Positions 1 through 60,296 of a DNA stretch of 64,000 nt are shown in pieces. This DNA comes from Macrostomum lignano (Eukaryota), in NCBI GenBank assembly GCA_002269645.1, contig NIVC01000856.1, forward strand, positions 248,001-312,000. Direction: 5' to 3'. Positions within the stretch are counted from its first letter, which is position 1; the number at the start of each line of letters is the position of its first letter. The notes beneath the pieces are model-generated. The model was not told the origin of the DNA and searched no databases. It worked only from the letters and a program-made list of their open reading frames with translations. Made by a program: the position numbers and the translations under genes.

Positions 1-119
1 TGTGACAGTACTTCTGTAGCTTTAATTAAGAGCTTGGATACCCCCTCCGACCAGGAACGTTTAAAACTGCATGGTGATTTCTGAATTTTCATTCAGCTAC
101 CAATAGTTCGCTACAATAC

Positions 120-2599
120 CTTCTTCCTTCCGTTCAGCTTCTCCTGCTCCATCAGAAAAGCGTCCAGGAAGTCGTTTGGCGAGCTGACTCCGGCCAGCTG
201 GGCCCGGTGAGCGTCGATTTGCATCTGGCAGAAGCCGTGCGTCACCTTCAGATTCCGCTGCACAACGTACACGTCAACGCCGAGCAGCTCTAGCAGGCGC
301 ATCACTCCCGGGATCTGGTACAGCAACGGAAATCCCACCGGGATGAATCTGGCCAAGTCGCCGCCCTGCAGATTCTCCTGGGTGGCCGCGAGGAAAGCTT
401 CGAACCGGTCGTCCTGGGAGCCAGCCCGATAGCCGAACAGCATCACGCTGATGACGTTGGCGATGGCCCGGCAGAGCACTTCAGTGGTGTCCACGCCAGC
501 TTCGCCAGCCGTGTTGAACTGATCGCGCAGGTCCTGCAGCTCCTGATGGATTGAGTCCTCGGTGCCGGCTCGCGCAAATCCGAAATCGCGAAGAACCTGA
601 CGATGTGTGGAGTTGCATGGTACTTACGGTGGTGCAACATACTCACTGGGTTGATCATTCATTACTTAAACTCTACTGTGAGGTGTTCCTAATAAAGAAC
701 GTAATTTTTAAGATTATAAAATCTGGAAAGGTTTATATTTGTGCCTTGGGCATCTCAAATGTCCACGTCCGACCAACGAAAGGCCCACCTTGAGAGCAAA
801 CCGCCTGTGCTCGCGCCACAGCTCGCCTTCTGAGGACACGATGCCCTTTCCGTGCGTAAGGCTGTTTATATAGTTGGAATTCATCCGACCGCTGAACACA
901 TCGCCGAATTCCTGCGAGGCCAGAGCCTCCTTGACGGCCGCATAGCTGTTCAACACGACGAACCGACGTGCGCCGAGTCTGTAGCTGACCAGGTCGCCGT
1001 AGCGTTTGCGCCAATCTGCGTGAGCAGCCAGGAATGTCGGCCGAGGCAGGTTCGGCAGGTTGCCTAGCAGAGGCCATCCTAAAATGAGGATTTATTTGGG
1101 ATTTCGCTTTGATACGAGCTGCATCTCAAAACCTTTGAAACCGGACAAAATTTCACGACGCCTAATGGCACCTCAACTCAACCACGGATTGATCTCAAAT
1201 TGGAGATTAGTACCTGAATTTTATTATCTCTAATTGGAGATTAGTACCTGGATGACGTGATTTCTAATTGGAGATTAATACCTGGATGATGTGATCTCTA
1301 ATTGGAGAAATTAGTACCTGGATTTTATGATCTCTAATTGGAGATAAATACCTGAATGATGTGATCTCTAATTGGAGAAATTAGTACCTGGATTTTATGA
1401 TCTCTAATTGGAGATAAATACCTGAATGACGTGATCTCTAATTGGAGATAAATACCTGAATGATGTGATTTCTAATTGGAGATAAATACCTGAATGACGT
1501 GATTTCTAATTGGAGATAAATACCTGAATGATGTGATTTCTAATTGGAGATAAATACCTGAATGACGTGATTTCTAATTGGAGATAAATACCTGAATGAT
1601 GTGATTTCTAATTGGAGATAAATACCTGAATGACGTGATTTCTAATTGGAGATAAATACCTGAATGATGTGATTTCTAATTGGAGATAAATACCTGAATG
1701 ACGTGATTTCTAATTGGAGATTAATACCTGGATGACGTGATCTCTAATTGGAGATAAATACCTGAATGATGTGATTTCTAATTGGAGATAAATACCTGAA
1801 TGACGTGATTTCTAATTGGAGATAAATACCTGAATGATGTGATTTCTAATTGGAGATAAATACCTGAATGACGTGATTTCTAATTGGAGATAAATACCTG
1901 AATGATGTGATTTCTAATTGGAGATAAATACCTGAATGACGTGATTTCTAATTGGAGATAAATACCTGAATGATGTGATTTCTAATTGGAGATAAATACC
2001 TGGATGACGTGATCTCTAATTGGAGATAAATACCTGAATGATGTGATTTCTAATTGGAGATAAATACCTGAATGACGTGATTTCTAATTGGAGATAAATA
2101 CCTGAATGATGTGATTTCTAATTGGAGATAAATACCTGAATGACGTGATTTCTAATTGGAGATAAATACCTGAATGATGTGATTTCTAATTGGAGATAAA
2201 TACCTGAATGATGTGATTTCTAATTGGAGATAAATACCTGAATGACGTGATTTCTAATTGGAGATAAATACCTGAATGATGTGATTTCTAATTGGAGATA
2301 AATACCTGAATGATGTGATTTCTAATTGGAGATAAATACCTGAATGACGTGATTTCTAATTGGAGATTAGTACCTGGATTCCATAACCTCTAATTGAAGA
2401 TTAATACCTGGATCAGGGTGGTCAGTGGGTTATTAACTGCGAACACCAGCATACCTGGCGGACCAGGGGGCGAACGGCGGCGGCGGTGCCTGGCGCCTCT
2501 GTAGAACAGCCAAACTGCGGCTACAGTCGCCACCGAAACAGCGGCAATGGTGGTCACGGATGACGAAGGAAGAGACCGGTTTAGCTGAGACAGCAACAT
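120..2599 (-). CDS. Cytochrome P450, CYP2-clan-like, 5' part (exons 2599-2455, 1078-789, 596-120; continues beyond the left edge)
   Basis: Spliced reading gives a hydrophobic N-terminal anchor, then RRRRSPPGPPG/WPLLGNL (proline-rich hinge), VVLNSYAAVKEAL, FSGR, GIVSSEGELWREHRRFALK/VLRDFG (WxxxR C-helix), AIANVISVMLFG and DFLDAFL. All introns are GT-AG with phases 1,0,0. The heme motif lies outside the window. Confidence 0.93.
1190..2412. repeat. 34-bp minisatellite filling CYP intron 1
   Basis: Unit tctaattggagataaatacctgaatga(t/c)gtgatt repeated about 35 times; T and C variants often alternate. Confidence 0.95.
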
Positions 2600-7430: not shown

Positions 7431-8084
7431 CTAGAGAAACTAACCAGCGATGTAAAGAGCCAAAATAGGAGTCGGCAAGAATTGACTAGGCTGGTCTGCT
7501 TGACTTATTACCGCTTTTGCTGGCTTGTGATCCCCTCTCGGAGTGGGAATGCCTCTCGTACAATTCCTTCCCTCAGCCTCGCTATTGTTTCGCTCCCTGC
7601 CGTGTCTCTTCGTCTCCCAAATCTCACTTTCAAGCAGGCAAGCCTCCTCCTCCACGAGTACACTCGGCCAGACTCCTCTCCTGTCTTCCATCAGAAGTCT
7701 CTCTTCCGCAGGCAATTCCTCTCCCGCTCGGAGAAATCTCGTCGCTATGGCAAAGAGAAAAACCATTTTTTGCCTAAACACATTAGCTGCTATGGGCCGC
7801 CTCCGTCACAGCCAACCAAGAGACAGACAGGCACGAGCACGCCACCTAAACTGTTTTCTCCTCTGGCCTCCCGCTCTACCAAAAGCTGAAAACACTTCCC
7901 CAGCCCTTGCCCGCAGTAACTCTGGTCCGTCCAGAGGAAGTACGAGTGAGAGCTCCACGCTGAATCGATACCCGCGTCGAAGAAAATAGCCTGCTTGCTG
8001 GGAACACGTTCCGTCCTTGACGTCCACTTTTACTCTCGGTCCACTGCCTTTCAGCTGCTCTTGAGCCCTGCTTAACTATGCATC

Positions 8085-8970
<886 letters not shown>

Positions 8971-16622: not shown

Positions 16623-17224
16623 AAAACAATAGAGATTGCGTGAAGGACGAACTCTTGAAAGACATAACAGAGGCTTATTTATGTATTAGCAAATTTATAT
16701 AATTCCTTCAAAATGAAGACACGCGGCACACATTCGCATACTGTATATTATTAGTCAATTGTAACAAAGACTACAGTACGCATATTGTAAAGCATGAATC
16801 GTCAGTGAGCCAACTAAGCATTCTTTGAACGCAGAATTTTCTGAAAAAAAAAATCTGCGACAATGGTTTCTCGCGCACTATTGTATATACCGGATCTGAT
16901 GCTCGGCATTGAAGCAAAGCTAATTAGAGCATACAATAAAGCATAGTACTCTGATACAAATTCCAAATTTAAATTGCAGTTCCCGTAGCAGCGGACAAGC
17001 GGTTTTAAACAAATCAATACGGTTAAAAGACACAAGAAAAAAGCAAATCAAGTGTTAAAATAAATATTACCAAAAATAGCAAGACTTCATCATGATGAAC
17101 TCATGAAAAACATTCGCCGGAGAGGGCGAAGGTTCAAAAATAGTTGTCGATCGGGTTATAAAAAGAACAGTTGGAACTTTTTCTGGACTAAGACAACAGC
17201 TTGTGCTGCTGTGCGCATGATAGG

Positions 17225-17318
17225 GACGGACAGACAGACAGACAGACAGACAGGAAGACAGACAGCCCGACAGACATAGATACACAGACAGACAGACGGG
17301 CAGATACACAGACACACC

Positions 17319-17349
<31 letters not shown>

Positions 17350-17408
17350 AAGATACACAGACACACCAGACAGACAGACAGACAGACAGAAAGATACACA
17401 GACACACC

Positions 17409-17451
<43 letters not shown>

Positions 17452-17469
17452 AAGATACACAGACACACC

Positions 17470-17548
<79 letters not shown>

Positions 17549-17651
17549 TTGAGAGACAGACAGACAGACGGAAAGACAGACAGACACACACACAGACAGA
17601 ATCTAAGACAGACAGACAGACGGAGAGACAGACAGACAGACAGACAGAAAG

Positions 17652-17692
<41 letters not shown>

Positions 17693-17713
17693 AAGACAGA
17701 CAGACAGATAGGC

Positions 17714-17746
<33 letters not shown>

Positions 17747-18110
17747 CACCAGACAGACAGACAGACAGACAGACAGGCAGACAGATACACAAACAGACAG
17801 ACACACCAGACAGACAGACACACCAGACAGACAGACAGACAGACAGGCAGACAGATACACAAACAGACAGACACACCAGACAGACAGACAGACAGACAGA
17901 CAGACAGGCAGGCAGACAGACAGACACAGACAGACAGACAGACAGACAGACACAGACATGCAGACAGACACGAAGATCAAATTTGGTACAAAAAGCGTAG
18001 AAAATGGCAACAAGATTATGATAAAACTAAATACAAGGATTCAAAGACGTCCCAGCGACAGACAGACAGAGCAGACACACAGACAGACAGACAGACAGAG
18101 CAGACACAAG
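17225..18110. repeat. (GACA)n microsatellite, interrupted
   Basis: Direct inspection. Confidence 0.95.
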
Positions 18111-19740: not shown

Positions 19741-20268
19741 TTAGCCAGCCTTAGCGTACAGCTGAGTCCACTCCCTAGCATTCTTAATCGCCTCCCGCTC
19801 GTTCCTCTTCCACAGCTCGGCAATATCGTGCTCCAATGGGTCGTCCGGATTTGGCGCGCTGAGCAGGGCTTGGACAGACAGCAGCACAGTGCGAATCTGC
19901 AGCGCCGGGCTCCATTTATCTTTTAGAATGTCCAGACAGATTCTGCCCAGTCTGTCAATGTTGGGATGATAGATCTTGGTCATGAAGCGCACTTTTGGAG
20001 CACTCATCGGATATTCCTCGGGTAGGAACAGTTCCAGCCTGAATTTGGTCAGTGGGGTGGTTGACAGTAGTATGACTAGCGCTTGTTTGATTTATAAATA
20101 ATAGCATTTAAAGCTGCCTACAGTATCTATCTACCTGCCTATCTATCTGCATATCTACTTGCCTATCTATCGTATCTACCTGCCTATCTATCTGCTTATC
20201 TACTTGCCTATCTATCTATCTACTTGCCTATCTATCTATCTACTTGCCTATCTATCTACCTATCTATC

Positions 20269-47800: not shown

Positions 47801-50800
47801 TGAGCAAATCGACAGGCCAGCCTTCAGACCCAACAATCGGCAAACGTGCTACCGATGCGGCGAATTCGGGCACCGAAGTTGCGATGCGGCCGTAGGGAAA
47901 CCTGCAGCATCTGCAACAAACCGGGACACCTTGCCAAGGCCTGCATGTCCAAGCGAAACTCAAGAGACCGCGTGCACATCCTCTATGATCAAAGGCGGCA
48001 GGACCCGGAGAGCTTCAGCAGTCTACCGAGCGACGATGAGGTGTTCTGTCTGGCTACAGACAAACTGCCGCTGCTGACAGTCTCAATCACGGCCAGCGGC
48101 TGGAAGCTCTCGTCGACAGTGGCGCCAGTTGCAATGTCATCGACATGGCGACCTTTCAGGAGATCAAGACTGGTAAGACGCCACTTCGGCTGCCAGCAAG
48201 GCGGCTTTATCCTTTCGGCTCTCGGTCGCCCCTGGAAACTGCCGGCAGGGCTAAGCTCCTGGTCAGCGTCGGCGGCTCGAAGGACATGGTCGACTTTACA
48301 GTGGTGCGCAACCAGGGCGTCACCATCCTGGGGAGGGCGACGAGTGAGAAATTCGGCGTATTGCGAGTTGGGCTAAAAAGAAAGACGCACATCAGCAGAA
48401 TTGGCAGCGCTGGCGGAATCGAAGCAGCTGAACTTGAGTGTCTGGAGAGCTACTCCGCAAATCTTCCAACTGACCAACTCGGTCAAGCGTTCAACTACCA
48501 CCGAACAGAAGTTTTAACAGCCAAACCGTCGCTATCCACGCTACCGAAGTCGGCATGGTCGATCATCAGTGTCGATTTTATCGGGCCCGTCAACGGTCGG
48601 CATTTCCTTTTGATCGTGGACCAGCACTCGCGCTACCCCATCATCGTAGCAATGAAGTCGATTACAGCTGTAGGCACGATCAATCAGCTGAAATAGATCT
48701 TCGCTATGTTCGGTATTCCGAAGCAAATCATGACCGGCAGCGGTCGGCCATTATCTTCGGAAGCATTCATCCAATTCGTCACCAGTCACCGGATCGGTCA
48801 CGACCGCATCAAGATGCTGCATCCAGAGGCCCAACGCATCACAGAGGACATGAAGCGGCTCCTAAACAATCTGCTCCGCTCCTCCAGCGCCCAAGGAGCT
48901 GCCTGGAGTGTTGCGCTGCGAGACTGGCTCGCCGCGTACAGCAGGACCCCAAACATCGACACGGAAGCCGCGCTAGCTGATCTGCTGTTCAGGAGACCGG
49001 TCCATCACTGCGCCAGCTGATCTGCTGTTCAGGAGACCGGTCCATCACTGCGCCAGCTGATCTGCTGTTCAGGAAACCGGTCCATCACTGCGCCAGCTGA
49101 TCTGCTGTTCAGGAGACCGGTCCATCACTGCGGCCCAGAGACTGGCTAACCAGCGGAGGCCGAGGCTACTATCGCCGATCGTACGCTGTGTTCATTCAAC
49201 ATGGGACAAGTCACGAGCTTTGATTATTTAACTATTGCGAATACGAGCCTATTTTAAGTGCACTTCCTTCTTTTTAATTTCCTTCGAAAATTCGTGTAGG
49301 GGAAAGATGTTGTACTCTATTCTACCTTGCGCCCTGCGCCCTTGTCAATTTGTAATGTACATCAAACTAATGTACATCCACAATACTCAAGTGCACGTTG
49401 CTCTCGGAGCGAACCCTTAGACTTCAAATATAGAAATCGTATTCAATGCCCAAATAGGGGCTAACTTCTTATTCAGCAAATTCTACTGGCCTCGCGTCGA
49501 TTACTACACACAGGTTTCTAACAGGTGTCTAACAGGTGTCTAGCAGGTCTCTAACAGGTGTCTAACAGGTGTCTAACAGGTTTCTAACTGGTGTCCATCA
49601 GGTGTTCAACAGGTCTCAATCAGGTATCTTACAGGTGGCTGACATGCAGGTGTCTAACAGGTTGCTAAAGGATGACTTTGGTGTCCAATAAATGTTTAAG
49701 AGGTGTCTAACAGATGAAAAAGGTATCGAAGCAATTTAACAGTGTACAAAGATATCTCTCAGTCCAATAGGTGCAGTCTAACATCAGCTTAACTCCCACA
49801 ATGGAACCGAACTTCAGCTACCCAAATTCTCCGGCGTGATGGGCGGCGTCAACTTCGCCGGCACGCTGCGCAACACCGACTCGACTTTCGCCGTCACGCA
49901 GCTGCAGTTCAACTCGGCCGGGGTCGCCAGCAGCGCTAAGGTTTCCGCGAGCGAAGAAACTGCCCAATATTTTCTCGCACTACTAACAGTAGTTTTCAGA
50001 CATGAAATATTTAATTTACGCTTTTCCAACTGCAGGTTGGCACCTGGACTCGAGCCGGAGGACTCGCTGGCGACGTTTCATCAGTTGAACTGACCTACCT
50101 GACCAAGCGGACTCTGAATGTCCGGCTCATTCACGTGAGGAGGCTGCGACCTACTTTTTAGTGAATATGGGCTCGAGGATGACAGTAGATGGGAGAAACA
50201 GATGAGAGGGAGGGAATTAGGCGACACAAGAGAAAAAGTAGATAGTGAGATGGTGCAAAATTGGCAGAGAAATAGGCAACGAGAGGGAGAAAAGTCGGCA
50301 ACGGGAGGGAGAGAAGTAGGCAACGGGAGGGAGAGAAGTAAGCAACGGGAGGGAGAGAAGTAAGCAACGGGAGGGAGAGAAGTAAGCAACGGGAGGGAGA
50401 GAAGTAGGCAACGGGAGGGAGAGAAGTAGGCAACGGGAGGGAGAGAAGTAAGCAACGGGAGGGAGAGAAGTAGGCAACGGGAGGGAGAGAAGTAGGCAAC
50501 GGGAGGGAGAGAAGTAAGCAACGGGAGGGAGAGAAGTAGGCAACGGGAGGGAGAGAAGTAGGCAATAAAAGGGAGAATCAAGGGGAGGGAGAGAGGTAGG
50601 CAACCGGGAAGAGAAGTAGGCAACGGAAGGCATGGAAGTAGGCAACAAGATAAGAGAAGTTGGTATCGAGAGGGATATAAGAAAGAGAGGGAGAGAAGTA
50701 GAGGGAGAAGTAGATAAATCAGCTCAGTTCTACAGCCGCTCCACTCCCGCCCCAGGACCCGCCGTTCGTGATCAAGCTGCCGAACGGCACCTTCACCGGC

Positions 50801-51237
50801 TACAGCGTCGAAATGCTGCAGGGCATCGCGGAGCGGATGAACTTCGACTACAGGCTGGTTGAGCAGCCCGACGGCGCCTACGGAGTCATGCTGGCTAACG
50901 GCAGCTGGAACGGCATGATGGGGGCGCTTGAGCGGGGGGTGAGAGTCATGTGTGACATTGTGACGGAAAATTGTATTGTATTATTTGTATTGAGGTATGG
51001 AAGGAAGAGGATTAGGGCTTGGATTTTTGAGATTTCAAAGTAAAAGTGAAACTGAAAGCGTGATGGAGATTGTGAGTGAGAGTGAGAGTGTGAGAGTGAG
51101 AGTGAGAGAGTGAGAGAGGGAGAGAAAGAATGAGAGTTAGACTGAGAGTGAGACGGAGACTGAGTGATAACGAGAGTGAGAGTAAGGGAGAGTGAGAGTG
51201 AGACGGAGACTGAGTGATAACGAGAGTGAGAGTAAGG

Positions 51238-51268
<31 letters not shown>

Positions 51269-51298
51269 GAGAGTGAGAGTGAGAGTGAGAGTGGGAGT

Positions 51299-51344
<46 letters not shown>

Positions 51345-54300
51345 AAGAGAGAGTGAGAGTGAGAGTAAGAGAGAGTGAGATAGAGAGAGAGAGAGAGAAG
51401 AGAGTGAGAGTGGAGAGTGAGAGTGAGAGTAAGAGTAAGAGAGAGTGAGAGTGAGAGTGAGAGTGAGATTAAGAGAGAGTGAGATAGAGAGAGAGAGAAG
51501 AGAGTGAGAGTGAGAGTGAGAGTAAGAGAGAGTGAGAGTGAGAGTAAGAGAGAGTGAGAGTGAGAGTAAGAGAGAGTGAGAGTGAGAGTAAGAGAGAGTG
51601 AGAGTGAGAGTAAGAGAGAGAGAGAAGAGAGTGAGAGTGGAGAGTGAGAGTGAGAGTAAGAGAGAGTGAGAGTGAGAGTGAGAGTAAGAGAGAGTGAGAT
51701 AGAGAGAGAGAGAAGAGAGTGAGAGTGGAGAGTGAGAGTGAGAGTAAGAGAGAGTGAGAGTGAGAGTGAGACAAGCTCAGATCGAGCACCCAGTTCAACC
51801 CTGGATTCCCAACCCGCTGCCAGGACGCGGACATGGCCATCGGGCCCATCACAATCACGGCCCAGCGGGAGCAGGTCGCCGACTTCTCCGTGCCCATCTA
51901 CGACTACGTGTCCCTGCAGATCGTGCTCAAGAAAGCGGCCGCCAGCAACGATCAGACCTTCTTTTTGAAGGCCTTCACCTGGGACGTGTGGGTCTGCATT
52001 ATTGCGATTGTCACCGTGACCGGCTTCCTCATCTTCTTTGTGGACAAGTGAGAGTCTTGAATCATTTTTTTGCTGCCGTCATCGGCGCCACAAACTGTTT
52101 GGGGATTGGCGCCACAAACTGATGAAGGATTGGCGCCACAAACTGATGGGGGATTGGCGCCACAAACTGATGAAGGATTGGCGCCACAAACTGTTTGGGG
52201 ATTGGCGCCACAAACTGATGGGGGATTGGCGCCACAAACCGATGAAGGATTGGCGCCACAAACTGATGGGGGATTGGCGCCACAAACCGATGAAGGATTG
52301 GCGCCACAAATTGATGGGGGGCTGGCGCCACAAACTGATCGGGGATTGGCGCCACAAAGCTTCCATCCTGACGGCCATAATTGAGAATAATGATTATGAA
52401 GAATGCCGCCCACACAGAACAACGGATGCCGCCCCCACAACAAAGGATGCCGCCCCCACAACAAAGGATGCCGCCCACACACAACAAAGGATGCCGCCCA
52501 CACACAACAAAGGATGCCGCCCACACAAAACAAAGGATGCCGCCCACACACAACAAAGGATGCCGCCCACACACAACAAAGGATGCCGCCCACACACAAC
52601 AAAGGATGCCTCCCACACACAACAAAGGATGCCGCCCACACACAACAAAGGATGCCGCCACCACACAACAAAGGATGCCGCCACCACACAACAAAGGATG
52701 GCGCCACCACACAACAAAGGATGGCGCCACCACACAACAAAGGATGGCGCCACCACACAACAAAGGATGGCGCCACCACACAACAAAGGATGGCGCCTCC
52801 GCAACTAAAGGGCCAGAGATCGGCGCCCCCAACGCTCGTCCCCGCCCACCCCGCTAATCCAGGGTGAGCCCGTTCTCCTTTCAAAACCGCTACCGCAACG
52901 ATCAAGTCCGAGACGGCGAGGCCGAAGGCAAGGTGTTCACCGTGAAGGAGTCGCTCTGGTACGTGCTCGGCGCCTACACGCAGGCTGGCGAGAGCTTCGA
53001 TCCCCGCTCGATGTCCTGTCGAACCATCATCGTGGGATTCTGGCTGTTCGGCTACTTGATGATGTCACTTTACACCGCTAACTTGGCCGCCCAGCTCACT
53101 GTTGACAAGCTGGTGCAGCCGCCGCAGGGATTCGACGAGCTCACCACCCAGGCCACGGTGAAGTACACCGTGATCAAGGATACGGCCGCCTACGAGCACT
53201 TCCAGCGGATGATGAACGCCGAGAAGAATCTGTACAGATATTGGCTCACCAGCGGCATCGGGAATGAGGAGACTGTCAACGAGGTGGGTTGATGGGGAAT
53301 GGGGCTGCTGGGGGATTGAGGGAAAGATAGAGGGGAAGATGGGATAGAGGGGAAGATGGGATAGAGGGGAAGGTGGGATAGAGGGGAAGGTGGGATAGAG
53401 GGGAAGGTGGGATAGAGGGGAAGATGGGATAAGATGGGACGGTGGGATAGATGGGAAGATGACATAAGAGGGGAAGATGGGATAGAGTGGAAGATGGGAT
53501 AGAGTGGAAGATGGGATAGAGTGGAAGATGGGATAGAGTGGAAGATGGGATAGAGTGGAAGATGGGATAGAGTGGAAGATGAGATAAGAGGGGAAGATGG
53601 GATGGAGGGGAAGACAGGATAGCTGGGAAGATGGGATAAGAGGGGAAGATGGGATAGAGGGGAAGGTGGGATGGAGGGGAAGATGGGATAGAGGGGAAGG
53701 TGGGATAGAGGGGAAGGTGGGATAGAGGGGAAGGTGGGATAGAGGGGAAGATGGGATAGAGGGGAAGGTGGGATAGATGGGAAGATGGGATAAGAGGGGA
53801 AGATGGGATAGAGTGGAAGATGGGATAGAGTGGAAGATGAGATAAGAGGGGAAGATGGGATGGAGGGGAAGACAGGATAGCTGGGAAGATGGGATAAGAG
53901 GGGAAGATGGGATAGAGTGGAAGACGGGATAAGAGGGGAAGATGGGATAAGAGGGGAAGATGAGATAAGATGGGAAGATATATGATAGAGGGGAAGATGG
54001 GTCGATGGGAAGATGGGATAAGATGGGACGGTGGGATAGATGGGAAGATGACATAAGAGGGGAAGATGGGATGGAGGGGAAGACAGGATAGACGGGAAGA
54101 TGGGTGGAGGGAAAATGGGATAAGACGGGAAGATGAGATAAGATGGGAAGTTATATGATAGAGGGGAAGATGGGTCGATGGGAAGATGGGATAAGATGGG
54201 ACGGTGGGATAGATGGGAAGATGACATAAGAGGGGAAGATGGGATGGAGGGGAAGACAGGATAGACGGGAAGATGGGTGGAGGGAAAATGGGATAAGACG

Positions 54301-57245
54301 GGAAGATGGGTGGAGGGAAAATGGGATAAGACGGGAAGATGGGAGAATGGCAATTTAAGGTGTGAAGAGAAAGTGTGACAGAAGCCATTCACAGAGGCAG
54401 TAACACCCAGTACGCATGCGACAAGCTCCGCAAATGCAATGCCAGCTGGAATGACAACAATCAGGTGGCAGCCCTGGAGACCTGGAAGTACCCGGTTATC
54501 GAGCGCTACACGTCCGTGTGGTCCCGAATGACCCGCTGGGGCTTCGCCGACAGCACCGAGGACGCTTTGAAGAAGATTCGACAGGACGGCATGGCGGTCT
54601 TCCTGGACAGCGCGCTGGTGAAGTACTACTCGGCCCAGTCCTGCGACCTCATGACCGTCGGGGAGCCGTTCGCGCCGAGGCCCTACGGCGTAGCGTTGCG
54701 CCAGAAATCGCCGCTGTTGAAGGCGTTGAATATTGCGTGAGTGCAAGAATGTACACTCTGATATGTGCACTCCAATATGTACACTCCAATATGTACACTC
54801 CAATATGTACACTCCAATATGTACACTCCAATATGTACACTCCAATATGTACCCTCCAATATGTACACTCCAATATGTACACTCCAATATGTACACTCCA
54901 ATATGTACACTCCAATATGTACACTCCAATGTGTACACTCCAATATGTACACTCCAATATGTACACTCCAATATGTACACTCCAATATGTGCACTCCAAT
55001 ACGTGCACTCCAATATGTACACTCCAATATGTACACTCCAATATGTACACTCCAATATGTGCACTCCAATATGTACACTCCAATATGTGCACTCCAATAT
55101 GTACACTCCAATATGTACACTCCAATATGTACACTTAAATTACATGTTAAAGTCACCTCACAACCACAGCAGCTCAACTGATGACATCCCACACAGCCAT
55201 GCAAAGTACAAAAACATTTTTTTTCGATTTTTCTTCCCAATTATCTGCACCGCTGATGGGATAATTATCACCTCTGGGGATCAATCCCTCTGTCTTTAGT
55301 GTCAAATATCCTCAATAGATTTGCATTCCTTCTTCTAATTATTCCCAGCTAAGGTCTCACCTTTCCAAATATCGCAAATCTATCCAGGTAAGCCCAGCTC
55401 AGGGCCGATAATCTTGAATACAAATTGCTTGTTGTTAATCCGGGGAAAACGATCCCAAATCCCAATCTCAAATGACCTCGCGCAGAGTTCTCGGTCTGAA
55501 CGAGAACCGGGTGACGGACTCGCTCAAGCAGGCCTGGTGGTCGGCCAACAAAGTCACCTGTCCGACTAGCGACTCCTCGTCTGGTGAGCCCAACTTTTCT
55601 TGCTTACTACTCAATTCCAATGGATAGTAGCGAGATAGGGGTATTTTTCTATTTTGTATAATCTATGCAATATTTTTTAATTATTCATTACCAGCTGTTC
55701 TGACATCCACACTATTTCATCTGACATCATCACTATATCACCTGACATCCTCACTGTCTCACCTGACATCCTTAATGTCTCACCTGACATCCTCAATGTC
55801 TCACCTGACATTCTCAATGTCTCACCTGACATTCTCAATGTCTCACCTGACATCCTCAATGTCTCACCTGACATCCTCAATGTCTCACCTGACATCCTCA
55901 ATGTCTCACCTGACATCCTCAATGTCTCACCTGACATCCTCAATCAATGTCTCACCTGACATCCTCAATGTCTCACCTGACATCCTCAATCAATGTCTCA
56001 CCTGACATCCTCAATGTCTCACCTGACATCCTCAATGTCTCACCTGACATTCTCAATGTCTCACCTGTCTCACTTGCAAAAGCGGCAGTTTTGAACTCCC
56101 ATCAAATTCTAACAAAAAACGTCTCAAATTATAATCAATTCGAAAATTTTTGCCAGGCCTCAGCCTGCAGACTCTCGGCGGCGCCTTCATCTTCTTCTGC
56201 ATCGGAGTCGGCATCGCCATCATCGTCTTCATCGGCGAGAAAATCGTAGCCAAAATCTACGGCGTGGAATGGGCGAAGGATGTAAGTGAAGAGATGCCAG
56301 AACCCAGTGTGATGGGAGACGCTGAAACCCAGATCCAGATTCACATCCGGTGTGAGACCTCATAACATCCGGTGTGGAACCCCACAACATCCGGTGTGGA
56401 ACCCCACAACACCCGGTGTAGAACCCCACAACACCCGGTGTGGAACCCCACAACACCCGGTGTGGAACCCCACAACATCCGGTGTGGAACCCCACAACAT
56501 CCGGTGTGGAACCCCACAACATCCGGTGTGGAACCCCACAACATCCAGTGTGGAACCCCACAACATCCGGTGTGGAACCCCACAACATCCGGTGTGGAAC
56601 CCCACAACATCCGGTGTGGAACCCCACAACATCCGGTGTGGAACCCCACAACATCCGGTGTGGAACCCCACAACATCCGGTGTGGAACACCACAACATCC
56701 GGTGTGGAACCCCACAACATCCGGTGTGAAACCCCACAACATGCAGTGTGGAACCCCACAACATCCGGTGTGGAACCCCACAACATCCGGTGTGGAACCC
56801 CACACCATCCGGTGTGAGACCGCACAACATCCGGTGTGGAACCCCACAACATCCGGTGTGAAACTCCCTACCCCCCAACCCGCAGGAGACCAAGCAGACC
56901 AAGCAGAACACGCTGATGATGATGGTCGGCCCGTCCACCGCCACCCTCCGAGCCTCGAATTCGTCCATCCGGCCGGCCACCGGCGGCCTGCCGCGGCCGG
57001 TCGTCGGGCACCACCGGTCCAGCGGCCGGGCGAGCAGTCGGGCGAGCGGCCGTCGCAGGAGCAGCGTCGGCCCGTCGGCCGCCTATCGGGTGAACGGCGA
57101 TGACGATGGCGGCAAGTCGACCGCAGCAGCCGCCCCCACCAGCGCCGAGGACATCGAGCTGGGCAGCAAGCCGGATGCGTCCAACTCCGCTGCTGGTGGT
57201 GTCGACAACGTCGTCGAGAAAGGTGTCGACGTGCCACCAAAGTAA
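44841..57245 (+). CDS. Ionotropic glutamate receptor superfamily, IR25a/IR8a-like; exons 44841-44940, 45698-45850, 46553-46656, 49818-49940, 50036-50134, 50756-50938, 51824-52047, 52863-53283, 54411-54736, 55486-55583, 56157-56281, 56886-57245
   Basis: Signal peptide MRQLWPLTLTVCLLGG; S1 DPPFV...GSWNGMMGAL...DMAIGPITITAQREQVADFS; M1; pore WYVLGAYTQAG; M3 SLYTANLAAQLT; S2 with the insert AEKNLYRYW...LETWKYPVIERYTSVW, resembling IR25a LAVWDYPVSDKYTKMW; M4 LSLQTLGGAFIFFCIG. All junctions are phase-consistent. Confidence 0.92.
45020..45655. repeat. 24-bp minisatellite, IR intron 1
   Basis: Unit gagaggggaacagagagggtgtcc. Confidence 0.95.
45900..46512. repeat. 19-bp minisatellite, IR intron 2
   Basis: Unit gagacacaaacagcagcta. 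Confidence 0.95.
46755..49790. repeat. 11-bp degenerate repeat (ctaacaggt[g/a]t)n split by an LTR insertion, IR intron 3
   Basis: Present at 46755-47090 and 49510-49790. Confidence 0.85.
47092..49508 (+). mobile_element. Ty3/gypsy-like LTR retrotransposon, internally deleted (no RT/RNase H)
   Basis: 201-bp TG...CA LTRs at 47092-47292 and 49308-49508, identical by eye; 5-bp TSD cacag; PBS-like tggcg at 47294; polypurine tract aggggaaaga before the 3' LTR; broken gag (PPEPFD...RWEDW, CCHC knuckles CYRC/CSICNKPGHLAKAC); protease VDSGA near 48112-48126; integrase core WSIISVDFIGP...IVDQHSRYP with a stop at 48694. Confidence 0.95.
50275..50715. repeat. 22-bp minisatellite, IR intron 5
   Basis: Unit ggcaacgggagggagagaagta. 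Confidence 0.93.
51070..51772. repeat. (GAGAGT)n-type repeat, IR intron 6
   Basis: Direct inspection. Confidence 0.93.
52080..52800. repeat. Two related 24-bp minisatellites, IR intron 7
   Basis: ggcgccacaaactgatgaaggatt (52084-52360) and gatgccgcccacacacaacaaag (52400-52800). Confidence 0.92.
53320..54345. repeat. 17-bp purine-rich minisatellite, IR intron 8
   Basis: Unit gatgggatagaggggaa and variants. Confidence 0.92.
54750..55135. repeat. 14-bp minisatellite, IR intron 9
   Basis: Unit gtacactccaatat. Confidence 0.95.
55695..56070. repeat. 21-bp minisatellite, IR intron 10
   Basis: Unit tctcacctgacatcctcaatg. Confidence 0.93.
56342..56862. repeat. 22-bp minisatellite, IR intron 11
   Basis: Unit catccggtgtggaaccccacaa. 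Confidence 0.95.
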
Positions 57246-57624
57246 AGCGATCGGGTCGGATCGGGGTTAATGTTTTCTGAAATTCAAATTCACTGACAAA
57301 ATGAATTATACTTTACAGACGCAATTGATATTACTGACAGTAGCACTCGGCACCATAAGCAAACGATTCACCGAAAAATATTATTTTCAATTTTTTTTCA
57401 ACACAAAGTTGCAATGAGTAAGTAGTATAGCCTGTGTTTTTTACTTTTTTGTATTTTTTCTTTGTTCGAGTCTTTTCAATCTATCGCATTATTTTATTTA
57501 TATAGTAATAAATATTTCTGACACAATATGGTTGCTGTGCAACTATTGACTGCGTTGGCTGGTCAAGGGTCACTCTATTAATGCTGCTGTGTATTTATGA
57601 TCTACCCGGATGTGCATCCTGACA

Positions 57625-58245
57625 TACAACCTGACCCCATCCTGACTCATGGCCCACTGCTGACCCACTCCTGATCCGTGTCCTGACCTACTCCTGATCC
57701 GTGTCCTGACCTACTCCTGATCCGTGTCCTGACACACTCCTGATCCGTGTCCTGACCTACTCCTGATCCGTGTCCTGACCCACTCCTGATCCGTGTCCTG
57801 ACCCACTCCTGATCCGTGTCCTGACCTACTCCTGATCCGTGTCCTGACCTACTCCTGATCCGTGTCCTGACCTACTCCTGATCCGTGTCCTGACCTACTC
57901 CTGATCCGTGTCCTGACCCACTCCTGATCCGTGTCCTGACCTACTCCTGATCCGTGTCCTGACCTACTCCTGATCCGTGTTCTGACCTACTCCTGATCCG
58001 TGTCCTGACCCGTGTCCTCACCCATGTCCTGACCCACTCCTGACCCGTGTCCTGACCTACTCCTGATCCGTGTCCTGACCCACTCCTGACCCATGTCCTG
58101 ACCCACTCCTGATCCGTGTCCTGACCCACTCCTGACCCATGTCCTGACCCGTGTCCTGACCCATGTCCTGACCCACTCCTGACCCACTCCTGATCCGTGT
58201 CCTGACCCACTCCTGACCCATGTCCTGACCCACTCCTGACCCACA
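57625..58245. repeat. 23-bp minisatellite decaying to 12-bp sub-units
   Basis: Unit tcctgacctactcctgatccgtg. Confidence 0.93.
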
Positions 58246-58472
58246 TTCTAACCGACATATAAAAAGGACTAATATAATAAAGCCCATATTTGTCTACTAG
58301 CCTCTTTAACCAGCCAACGCTACAAGCAGATATTTTTCTGCGCCATGCTTGACGAACCACGCCTGATAATTTATCCACTACGACGAGCAAATGCCTTTAA
58401 ATATTTTATTCACATTCAGGACACAGAGCGCCTTTGACTATTTATTAAAATCTGCCAGCAAATTCTTCACCT

Positions 58473-59316
58473 ATGACTATGATAAGTACTTCCGGCGCCT
58501 CAGCCTAAGTAAAAAGGCTCTTACGCCACTAGAGATAATTTAGATTCCAGATTGGGAGTGTACTCATGTACACTAAAAGCCAATTAGACTATAGAGGACT
58601 GTACAGGGCAATAACATAAAATCCAAACCTCCCCGGGAGACAGTGACAGCGGTTCGACGAACCAGTCAGGAGCCCGTGCCCAAAAACCAGGTAGAAGGCC
58701 CCTTAGCCTGTTAGGGATGGCCCGAAGGCCTAGAGCCGTGGCAACCATGCTGGTGCCGACCGCCCACCACCCCCGGGTACATATCAAAAACCTCCCCGGG
58801 GCCAGAGGGGGTTGAGTGAACAATTCAGGGAAGCCCGTGCCTACTCCTGGGTTAGAAAGCCAATGCCGGTCATTTGACCGCCCCCCACGGCCGTGGCAAC
58901 CCGAAGGAGCCTCCCCCCCAACTAAACCCCGGGTACTCTTGCCAACAGACAGTCTCTTATCTTTGAAGCGGCAGGAGGGCTAATCGCCGGGACTGTTTCA
59001 CCCTTTGCTTCGCCAACCCGCCATTTCTATTGTGACCGTGCCAACGGTCTCGTCCTGCTCAGACTCAGTCCTGGTTCTGGCACACTCCAGCTTTAATAGG
59101 GTCGCTGGCTGTACGCTCAGAGGGCGCCTGAGGGATACCGTCAGAGCACCTTGGTACAGGTATAGGCCTGCCTTCCTATACAGCTACCCACAGCCCTTCC
59201 CGATCCACTATTACCCTCCAACCCAGCCTACTCACTCATTACAAGCTTTCAGCCAGGCAGAGACAAGTTTCACAGGAGTGACTGCGGTTAGGCGTCTCTA
59301 TGCGAGACAAAACCAG
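58473..59316. mobile_element. 844-bp insertion flanked by a 16-bp direct repeat (probable retroposed non-autonomous element)
   Basis: agcaaattcttcacct at 58457-58472 and 59317-59332; GC-rich interior with no recognisable ORF. Confidence 0.6.
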
Positions 59317-60121
59317 AGCAAATTCTTCACCTCTGAAGCAGTTAGCATTGTGTAGCTTTTTAGATGCAAAAAGATTCAACTTTACTTTTCTTAGAAAATT
59401 TTCGATTAATTTTCATTCACAACTTTCGAGGTACTGTTAGTAGACTCGTTTGAATACTTACGAATTTTTTTCTGTTTTCGCACAAAATATAAAATAACCA
59501 AAGCTGCAAAATGCGGCTAATTCCAAATTGAATTTTGCTTTCACCTAAAAAATATTTTTCAAAGTGCTGAAGTAACTTTCATAACAGTGGAACCAATTAT
59601 AGAAAACAGTTGAAACCATTCCGTCTAATTATTTGAATTTAAAGCATTTCTATACCTCAATCTCAATTGACTTTCGAACTTGATGAATCTGTCAGAGAGT
59701 TCAAAGTACTCACTCATTTTCACATTTTGAGCATAATTAAAACTTGAATTTTATTTGACTAACTTTTGAGCAATTGTTGACTTGACTCAATGCATCTCGA
59801 AATCAATTTTGAAGAGTCTACAAAACTCAGTTCTCAAGCGGTCTGTTTGCGGCTGTAATGCACACACAGTTGATTTCTATTGTGTGAAAAAATTAACAGA
59901 GAATCACAACTCATCTGAGACAGACGAGTCTGATTGGAGATTGCTCAGACAGATCAATTCGATTGTTGAACTAGAGATAATTATAGAATAAATAAAATGA
60001 GTTGTTTTCGCTCTTCTGGCTGCTGAGCTGTGTGATGGAGAGTCTGACTTCCGTGAGTTACTTCATTGGAGAATTGATATTGGAGAGTGAGCTCCACAGT
60101 GAGGGGGTGAGGGATCTGGAC

Positions 60122-60296
<175 letters not shown>

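Follow-up and report, generated by a model that had tools for sequence, protein, structure and literature searches.

Several classes of mobile elements carry short structured or repeated modules of the kind analyzed here. Tandem monomers are common within transposons, for example in the 5' UTRs of LINEs, and bivalve MITE/Helitron-like non-autonomous transposons carry tandem monomers of ~160 bp. Helitrons insert without a target-site duplication, while LINE-driven insertion typically leaves a flanking duplication of 7-20 bp. Dimeric SINEs of the Alu type combine two related structured arms of ~130-150 nt in one non-autonomous retroposon. Retroelements also frequently bear ribozymes (PMC7229834, PMC3185411, PMC3774820). 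For example, the metazoan non-LTR retrozymes consist of tandem repeats of 150-450 bp with type I hammerheads, have a GC content below 45-50% and show flanking duplications, where these are present, of more than 4 bp (PMC7229834). HDV-like ribozymes are likewise found at the 5' ends of non-LTR retrotransposons such as R2 and L1Tc/NARTc (PMC3774820, PMC3185411).

The locus described here is located in a 64-kb window of animal DNA (the window being the whole stretch that was analyzed) and comprises two tandem modules of ~150 nt, called A and B, that are embedded in an 844-bp non-coding segment. The segment and its parts are as follows.

58457-58472: 16-bp direct repeat AGCAAATTCTTCACCT, left copy, interpreted as a target-site duplication
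58473-59316, strand leaning minus: inserted non-coding segment of 844 bp, delimited by the repeat boundaries and the break in GC content
58473-58624: left arm of 152 bp, beginning with the short repeat ATGACTATGATA and containing the hairpin AGTGTAC-tcat-GTACACT, as read from the sequence
58625-58780, minus strand: module A, 156 nt, a predicted extended imperfect hairpin (minus-strand MFE -74.3, z -2.3; 172 bits under the R1 model)
58781-58787: 7-nt linker ATATCAA between modules A and B, as read from the sequence
58788-58936, minus strand: module B, 149 nt, homologous to A (160 bits under the R1 model)
58937-59316: right arm of 380 bp, ending in GTCTC-tatgc-GAGAC and AAAACCAG
59317-59332: 16-bp direct repeat AGCAAATTCTTCACCT, right copy, interpreted as a target-site duplication

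The 844-bp segment looks like a mobile insertion in that it is flanked by a perfect 16-bp duplication, shows a sharp break in GC content and has no coding capacity. The original prediction had described an 844-bp segment with a 16-bp repeat resembling a target-site duplication, and this description stands. The two copies of AGCAAATTCTTCACCT (58457-72 and 59317-32) are identical at 16/16 positions, enclose exactly 844 bp and are the only two in the window, as compared to 0.09 copies expected from shuffled sequence with two mismatches permitted. GC content is 55% in the segment as a whole, 62.5% in the modules and 33% in the immediate flanks, with the break falling at the 16-bp repeats themselves. 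Since the flanking repeats are identical, the insertion is recent. The element begins with ATGACT, finishes with AACCAG and has no terminal inverted repeats. There are no Pfam domains in the open frames of the segment, and searches of protein collections returned no homologues for a 131-codon frame that spans the modules, for a 123-codon frame of chance-like character in the right arm or for a six-frame concatenate. Additionally, the sequence blocks that the two modules share occupy different reading frames in A and B, as read from the translations. Conservation of these blocks is thus not a consequence of coding, and a protein-coding reading was rejected on the grounds of frame, domains and homologues.

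The combination of a 16-bp duplication, a lack of terminal inverted repeats and a lack of coding capacity fits a non-autonomous retroposon mobilized by LINE machinery or a retrocopy of a non-coding transcript. The absence of coding capacity is the general property of non-autonomous retroposons, and the perfect 16-bp duplication is of the LINE type (~7-20 bp) that flanks SINEs. As regards a SINE head, ARAGORN detected no tRNA-like gene and Rfam gave no tRNA, 5S or SRP match even at E <= 10. The element is long for a SINE at 844 bp and has no poly(A) tail: its plus strand ends in ...ACAAAACCAG without poly(A), and its minus strand ends in a short repeat (TCAT-AG-TCAT). This imperfect repeat is the left end of the element (58473-58484, ATGACTATGATA), which on the minus strand reads ...TATCATAGTCAT-3'. 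In a minus-sense element, it could represent a 3' terminal repeat of the LINE type. We lean towards the minus strand as the sense strand, with this terminal repeat at the left boundary and the G.U-rich fold described below as the two pointers. A weak pointer to the plus strand is that the 844 bp contain no TTTT run, where about one is expected by chance, which is not a significant deficit. On the minus strand, runs of four to five T residues occur five times within 58473-59316, including 58682-86 in module A and 58786-90 after module B, and a sixth run lies outside the element at 58447; the distribution of these runs in the element is not significant given its composition.

No second copy of the element was found in the 64-kb window by blastn at word size 9, by an nhmmer profile of A and B or by a covariance model run with filters off. 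In public collections, in which the host genome is not represented, patterns built from the conserved blocks gave 0 matches in metagenome contigs and in bacterial and archaeal genomes, and only two chance matches among viral contigs, both in GC-rich phage coding sequence. A literature text search with the conserved blocks returned unrelated primers only, and a search of the literature on Macrostomum ribozymes, retrozymes or SINEs found nothing relevant.

The two modules share six blocks in the same order, located as follows.

A 58625-37, B 58788-800: block 1, AAACCTCCCCGGG
A 58666-70, B 58825-29: block 2, TCAGG
A 58671-80, B 58832-41: block 3, AGCCCGTGCC
A 58692-700, B 58853-61: block 4, TAGAARGCC
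A 58735-46, B 58890-901: block 5, GCCGTGGCAACC
A 58771-80, B 58927-36: block 6, CCCCGGGTAC

With the exception of TCAGG, each block has exactly two occurrences in the 64-kb window. All six motifs named in the original prediction are therefore where it had placed them and in the order that it gave, and the five spacer hairpins that it listed for A and B are all present as well. CCCGGG palindromes lie at both ends of each module, and the tandem period is 163 bp. A global alignment of A with B scores 87 as compared to 10.6 +/- 4.4 for shuffled B (z = 17.5). Identity amounts to 108/163 columns in a gap-rich alignment and to 52-53% in MAFFT alignments, for an overall range of 52-66%, and the identities are clustered into four runs of 10-13 bases (permutation p ~0.012). 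A and B are thus clearly homologous, and they go back to an old internal duplication. Because the modules are only 52-66% identical while the insertion is recent, the duplication that formed the dimer must be much older than this copy of the element, and the arrangement of two modules must have been present already in the element or transcript that served as the source. Decay in place after a local tandem duplication is consequently a less natural reading, although decay within a single-copy source gene remains compatible with the divergence of A and B.

Among the described systems, the dimeric SINEs are a close comparison for the locus. As in Alu, two homologous but diverged structured modules of ~150 nt lie in tandem within a non-coding element, and the 16-bp duplication is within the range typical of LINE-driven insertion. 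In contrast to these SINEs, there is no detectable 7SL, tRNA or 5S origin, there is neither poly(A) nor an A-rich linker, the modules are internal with unrelated arms of 152 bp and 380 bp, and the 844-bp element exceeds typical SINE size. The bivalve tandem-repeat transposons are similar in that a few monomers of ~160 bp lie between unique arms of a short non-coding mobile element; however, the monomers here are much more diverged and have compensated stems. Helitron-type carriers differ further, as the element here has a 16-bp flanking duplication and contains neither TC...CTRR termini nor an adjoining microsatellite. With the retrozymes the locus shares short tandem repeats in a non-autonomous non-coding element of an animal genome, and the 163-bp period fits their range of 150-450 bp. 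Unlike in retrozymes, there is no hammerhead core or Rfam hammerhead match, the modules have a GC content of 62.5% where that of retrozymes is below 45-50% (PMC7229834), the monomers are strongly diverged, and unrelated arms are retained on both sides.

Folding of the single sequences is unremarkable, with z values of -1.3 and -1.2 for the plus strands of A and B and -2.3 and -1.1 for their minus strands, and there is no excess stability in 150-nt windows taken out of register. The signal obtained by comparing the two modules is stronger. On the minus strand, RNAalifold predicts a consensus of 38 pairs, 16 of which have changed on both sides and are still paired. In the predicted architecture, the CCCCGGG termini close a long outer stem, the top branches three ways, and blocks 5' and 4' (primes denoting the minus-strand blocks) have a small hairpin between them. 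Pairing of the terminal cccggg blocks, which the original prediction had suggested, thus reappears in this consensus as the CCCCGGG/CCCCGGG closure of the terminal stem. As a null, alignment columns were shuffled within conservation classes and refolded. These shuffles yield 6.9 +/- 2.3 pairs changed on both sides, 0/300 of them reach 16, and the consensus-energy z is -4.0. Two other MAFFT modes give 15-16 compensatory pairs where ~6-7 are expected (0/200 shuffles, z -4.1 to -5.2), and the gap-rich alignment gives 5 where 2.9 are expected (p ~0.1, z -3.4), so that the minus-strand energy z ranges from -3.4 to -5.2 across alignments. Sliding the 3' partners by 1-3 columns lowers the proportion of paired cells from 100% to 33-68%, a control with a built-in bias, since the same two sequences had served to derive the structure.

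The plus strand behaves differently. Its consensus has 24 pairs that are mainly between blocks (1:6 and 3:5), its energy z is -2.3 to -3.5 and its compensatory pairs are at chance level. In the minus-strand fold, G.U pairs account for 17/76 paired cells. On the plus strand these would turn into A.C mismatches, so that only the minus strand can form the fold in full. Shared helices of at least 4 bp number 36 on the minus strand and 9 on the plus strand, a count to be read with the many chance helices that a G+U-rich sequence forms. We consider that there is moderate evidence for a fold common to A and B that leans towards the minus strand. This grade reflects the fact that only two sequences are available, that the result depends on the alignment and that the single-sequence z values are weak. 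The candidate structured RNA of the original prediction is accordingly retained inasmuch as a shared fold exceeds the column shuffles, with the signal being stronger on the minus strand, which is opposite to the strand that had been read.

Additional pairing may exist outside the nested fold. The complement of block 4 on the minus strand (block 4', GGCYUUCU) can pair with the conserved tail GGGAGGUU, which lies beyond the closing stem, to give 8 bp that include four G.U pairs, and the sole difference in block 4' between the two modules, a C to U change, preserves this pairing. The positions involved, on the minus strand in both modules, are as follows.

58692-58700 with 58625-58632, minus strand: block 4'/tail pairing in module A
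58853-58861 with 58788-58795, minus strand: block 4'/tail pairing in module B

If formed, this pairing would be a possible pseudoknot that could account for the conservation of AAACCTCC.

The reading that we favor, tentatively and at somewhat less than an even chance, is that an unclassified non-coding retroposon carries, in duplicate, a structured RNA domain that acts in cis and is likelier encoded on the minus strand. An old internal duplication has given rise to two modules of ~150 nt that are now carried in a young, non-coding, retroposon-like insertion of 844 bp. Each module would fold as a long imperfect hairpin closed by pairing of the conserved CCCCGGG ends, with a variable outer stem that retains pairing through changes on both sides, with conserved blocks 3 and 5 complementary to one another and with blocks 4 and 5 separated by a small hairpin that differs in sequence between A and B and is nevertheless kept. 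The domain may have been maintained because it stabilizes the RNA of the element or because it is recognized by borrowed retrotransposition machinery. This proposed logic, in which a folded RNA domain is kept as it serves propagation, would be the same as that of dimeric SINEs such as Alu. The data show the homology of the modules, the signature of an insertion and a shared fold relative to shuffles, and from there we infer the strand of the RNA, selection on its fold and its function. In support are the A/B alignment (z = 17.5), the clustering of the blocks, conservation that is not due to coding and the 16 minus-strand compensatory pairs as opposed to 6.9 +/- 2.3 in shuffles. Against it are the restriction to two sequences, the weak single-sequence stability (z -1.1 to -2.3), a compensatory excess that shrinks to 5 versus 2.9 in the gap-rich alignment, the abundance of chance helices, the lack of a further copy in the 64-kb window or in the collections scanned, and an element that has no poly(A) tail, no tRNA, 5S or 7SL head and no identified partner element.

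Should the fold be confirmed across many copies, it would constitute a first structured-RNA module for the almost uncharacterized non-autonomous retroelements of free-living flatworms, and it would provide an independent example of an Alu-like strategy in which a duplicated folded domain is carried. At present, the element is one unclassified transposon copy in a genome that is reportedly rich in repeats. Of the original proposal of an unclassified RNA motif, possibly a ribozyme, in a non-autonomous retroelement, the likeness to a mobile insertion is supported and the structured RNA is reasonable as a candidate, whereas the catalytic part, that of a ribozyme, is unsupported.

The strongest rival is that the modules are a neutral relic in which an old tandem duplication, within a transposon or a retrocopied non-coding transcript, has been decaying so that the blocks and hairpins are functionless leftovers. 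We regard this as possible although unlikely. It is in keeping with the only moderate significance of block clustering (p ~0.012), with the unremarkable single-sequence folding, with the loss of the covariation excess in the gap-rich alignment and with the lack of further copies in the 64-kb window. Simple decay would not, however, be expected to leave a consensus-fold energy that exceeds column shuffles in every alignment tried (z -2.3 to -5.2), nor 15-16 pairs changed on both sides in the MAFFT alignments where 6-7 are expected. It would also not be expected to leave conserved blocks that are complementary to one another, as blocks 3 and 5 are, or runs of 10-13 bases that are intact while the spacers are near saturation.

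Rather less probable is a function at the level of DNA, with the units of ~160 bp acting as promoter or enhancer monomers, as protein-binding repeats or as a transposon-borne satellite seed, and with the blocks as binding sites. Short blocks that are exactly conserved while the spacers vary freely, including in length, are what such a function would show, and the 163-bp period is nucleosome-sized, CCCGGG palindromes mark the two ends of each unit and tandem monomers in transposons are common. Yet compensated stems and a strand asymmetry in G.U pairing are not expected of binding sites, and there are only two units, whose divergence is far above that typical of promoter monomers or satellite units.

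More doubtful still is the possibility that the modules represent a new, unclassified minus-strand RNA motif that is dimeric in a Macrostomum retroposon family, with the blocks forming a functional core that may include the block 4'/GGGAGGUU pseudoknot. Such a motif might serve the retrotransposition machinery as a protein-binding scaffold; that it is a new catalytic fold is much less likely.

It is improbable, to a slightly greater degree, that the modules are minus-strand small-RNA genes or precursors, either ~150-nt RNAs with paired ends and an oligo-U tail (Pol III products of the Y, vault or snaR type) or long processed hairpins. The minus strand of both modules begins with GTACCC and finishes with CCCGGGGAGGTTT, a terminal stem joins the two ends and the fold is specific to this strand. 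There is also a T5 run directly after module B, formed by the linker and the first bases of B, and TTT-GGA-TTTT follows module A. On the other hand, a further T5 run within the minus strand of module A (58682-86) would stop Pol III early, and we have down-weighted the Pol III reading for this reason. Additionally, a reading of the sequence gave no convincing A- or B-box match, there is no match to a tRNA or known small-RNA family, the sequences upstream of the two modules are unrelated, and the hairpins far exceed animal miRNA precursors in size and branching.

The proposal that each module is a self-cleaving ribozyme, with a catalytic fold, HDV-like or novel, by which the transcript of the retroelement is processed, was examined against covariance models, descriptors and the structure of the element. 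Rfam 15 gave no match in the 64-kb window at gathering thresholds. With the cut-off relaxed to E <= 10, searches of the 1.1-kb region and, with the laxest filters, of each module by itself returned only compositional noise of the lncRNA and snoRNA type that is far under family thresholds, with no ribozyme family among them. The Rfam comparison suggested with the original prediction has thus yielded no ribozyme for the region or for either module. Specifically, HDV, CPEB3 and drz-type models have no match on either strand at gathering thresholds or at E <= 10, and there is no covariance-model match at E <= 10 for the twister, twister-sister, pistol, hatchet, hairpin or VS ribozymes. The hammerhead core CUGANGA and its relaxed form CUGAN[GA]A are absent from both strands of 58440-59345, with no Rfam hammerhead match.

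A resemblance to HDV-like ribozymes is present in module A, where gcggttc can indeed pair with gagccgt as originally proposed, to give a 7-bp P1-like helix (GCGGUUC/GAGCCGU) that is followed by GG, and where the hairpin GGC-CCGAAG-GCC could supply P3, L3 and P1.1. Together with the retroelement context, this 7-bp helix and GG by a small GC hairpin are what the locus has in common with the ribozymes of R2 and L1Tc/NARTc. In contrast to those ribozymes, the modules are not at the 5' end of the element, there is no covariance-model match, the helix is not conserved in module B and the nested double pseudoknot cannot be completed. The catalytic, HDV-like part of the original prediction is not supported. 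When a descriptor is used to complete the fold of A, J4/2 becomes over-long (>20 nt) and P2 is reduced to 4 bp that reach into module B. Large HDV-like ribozymes with peripheral domains and insertions are known (PMC4908430), so the long spacing between P1 and P2 is not by itself disqualifying. What disqualifies the HDV reading, on the comparison of the two modules, is that P1 is not conserved between them. Although the 3' strand of P1 lies in a block common to both modules, the homologous strand of B (CGGCCGU) has no partner of at least 5 bp within 140 nt upstream. Scanning both strands with a relaxed HDV-like descriptor, a check also proposed at the outset, gave 201 matches on the plus strand, where shuffles of that strand gave 14-133. 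The minus strand, which was not shuffled, gave 814. A descriptor that matches shuffled sequence tens to more than 100 times separates real from random poorly, and its matches are therefore not evidence. Finally, the copy bounded by the target-site duplication retains 152 bp to the left of the two modules and 380 bp to their right, indicating that the RNA template was not cut at the modules, and an intact copy across them is not what is expected of an efficient sense-strand self-cleaving motif. The modules do not belong to any known class of self-cleaving ribozyme, and we consider self-cleavage to be highly improbable.

The Macrostomum genome is reported as rich in repeats, and the 64-kb window combines ordinary host genes with abundant micro- and minisatellites. 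Its recognizable features beyond the element are as follows.

114-1091, minus strand: cytochrome P450 exons (Pfam E = 1.5e-14 and 1.6e-08), an ordinary host gene
8027-8900 (~8-9 kb): (TATC)n and (GTCT)n tetranucleotide arrays
17213-17980 (~17.2-18 kb): (GACA)n tetranucleotide array
19744-20091, minus strand: ubiquitin-conjugating-enzyme exon (UQ_con, Pfam E = 9.5e-38), an ordinary host gene
47804-49017, plus strand: LTR retrotransposon remnant with a frameshifted gag (CCHC zinc knuckle) and an aspartic protease, both by Pfam matches slightly under curated cut-offs
50714-56362, plus strand: ionotropic glutamate receptor exons, by similarity to UniRef A0A1I8I359
57591-58253: 23-bp minisatellite CTGACCCACTCCTGATCCGTGTC, ~26 copies with 88-92% matches, stopping ~200 bp upstream of the insertion
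60124-60296 (~60.1 kb): (ACAG)43 tetranucleotide array

The module pair lies ~2.1 kb downstream of the last recognizable glutamate receptor exon. The concatenated receptor exons are 92% identical to the Macrostomum lignano protein A0A1I8I359, with the second-best match being from Schistosoma at 44%, which identifies the host as M. lignano or a flatworm very closely related to it. The 8% mismatch could be due to a paralogue or homeologue, to a sister species or to rough exon boundaries in the query. The M. lignano spliced-leader sequence is absent from the 64-kb window. The minisatellite CTGACCCACTCCTGATCCGTGTC and the tetranucleotide arrays place the 844-bp element in very repeat-dense DNA. 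Over 281 nt, the array at 8.5 kb is 93% complementary to that at 17.5 kb.
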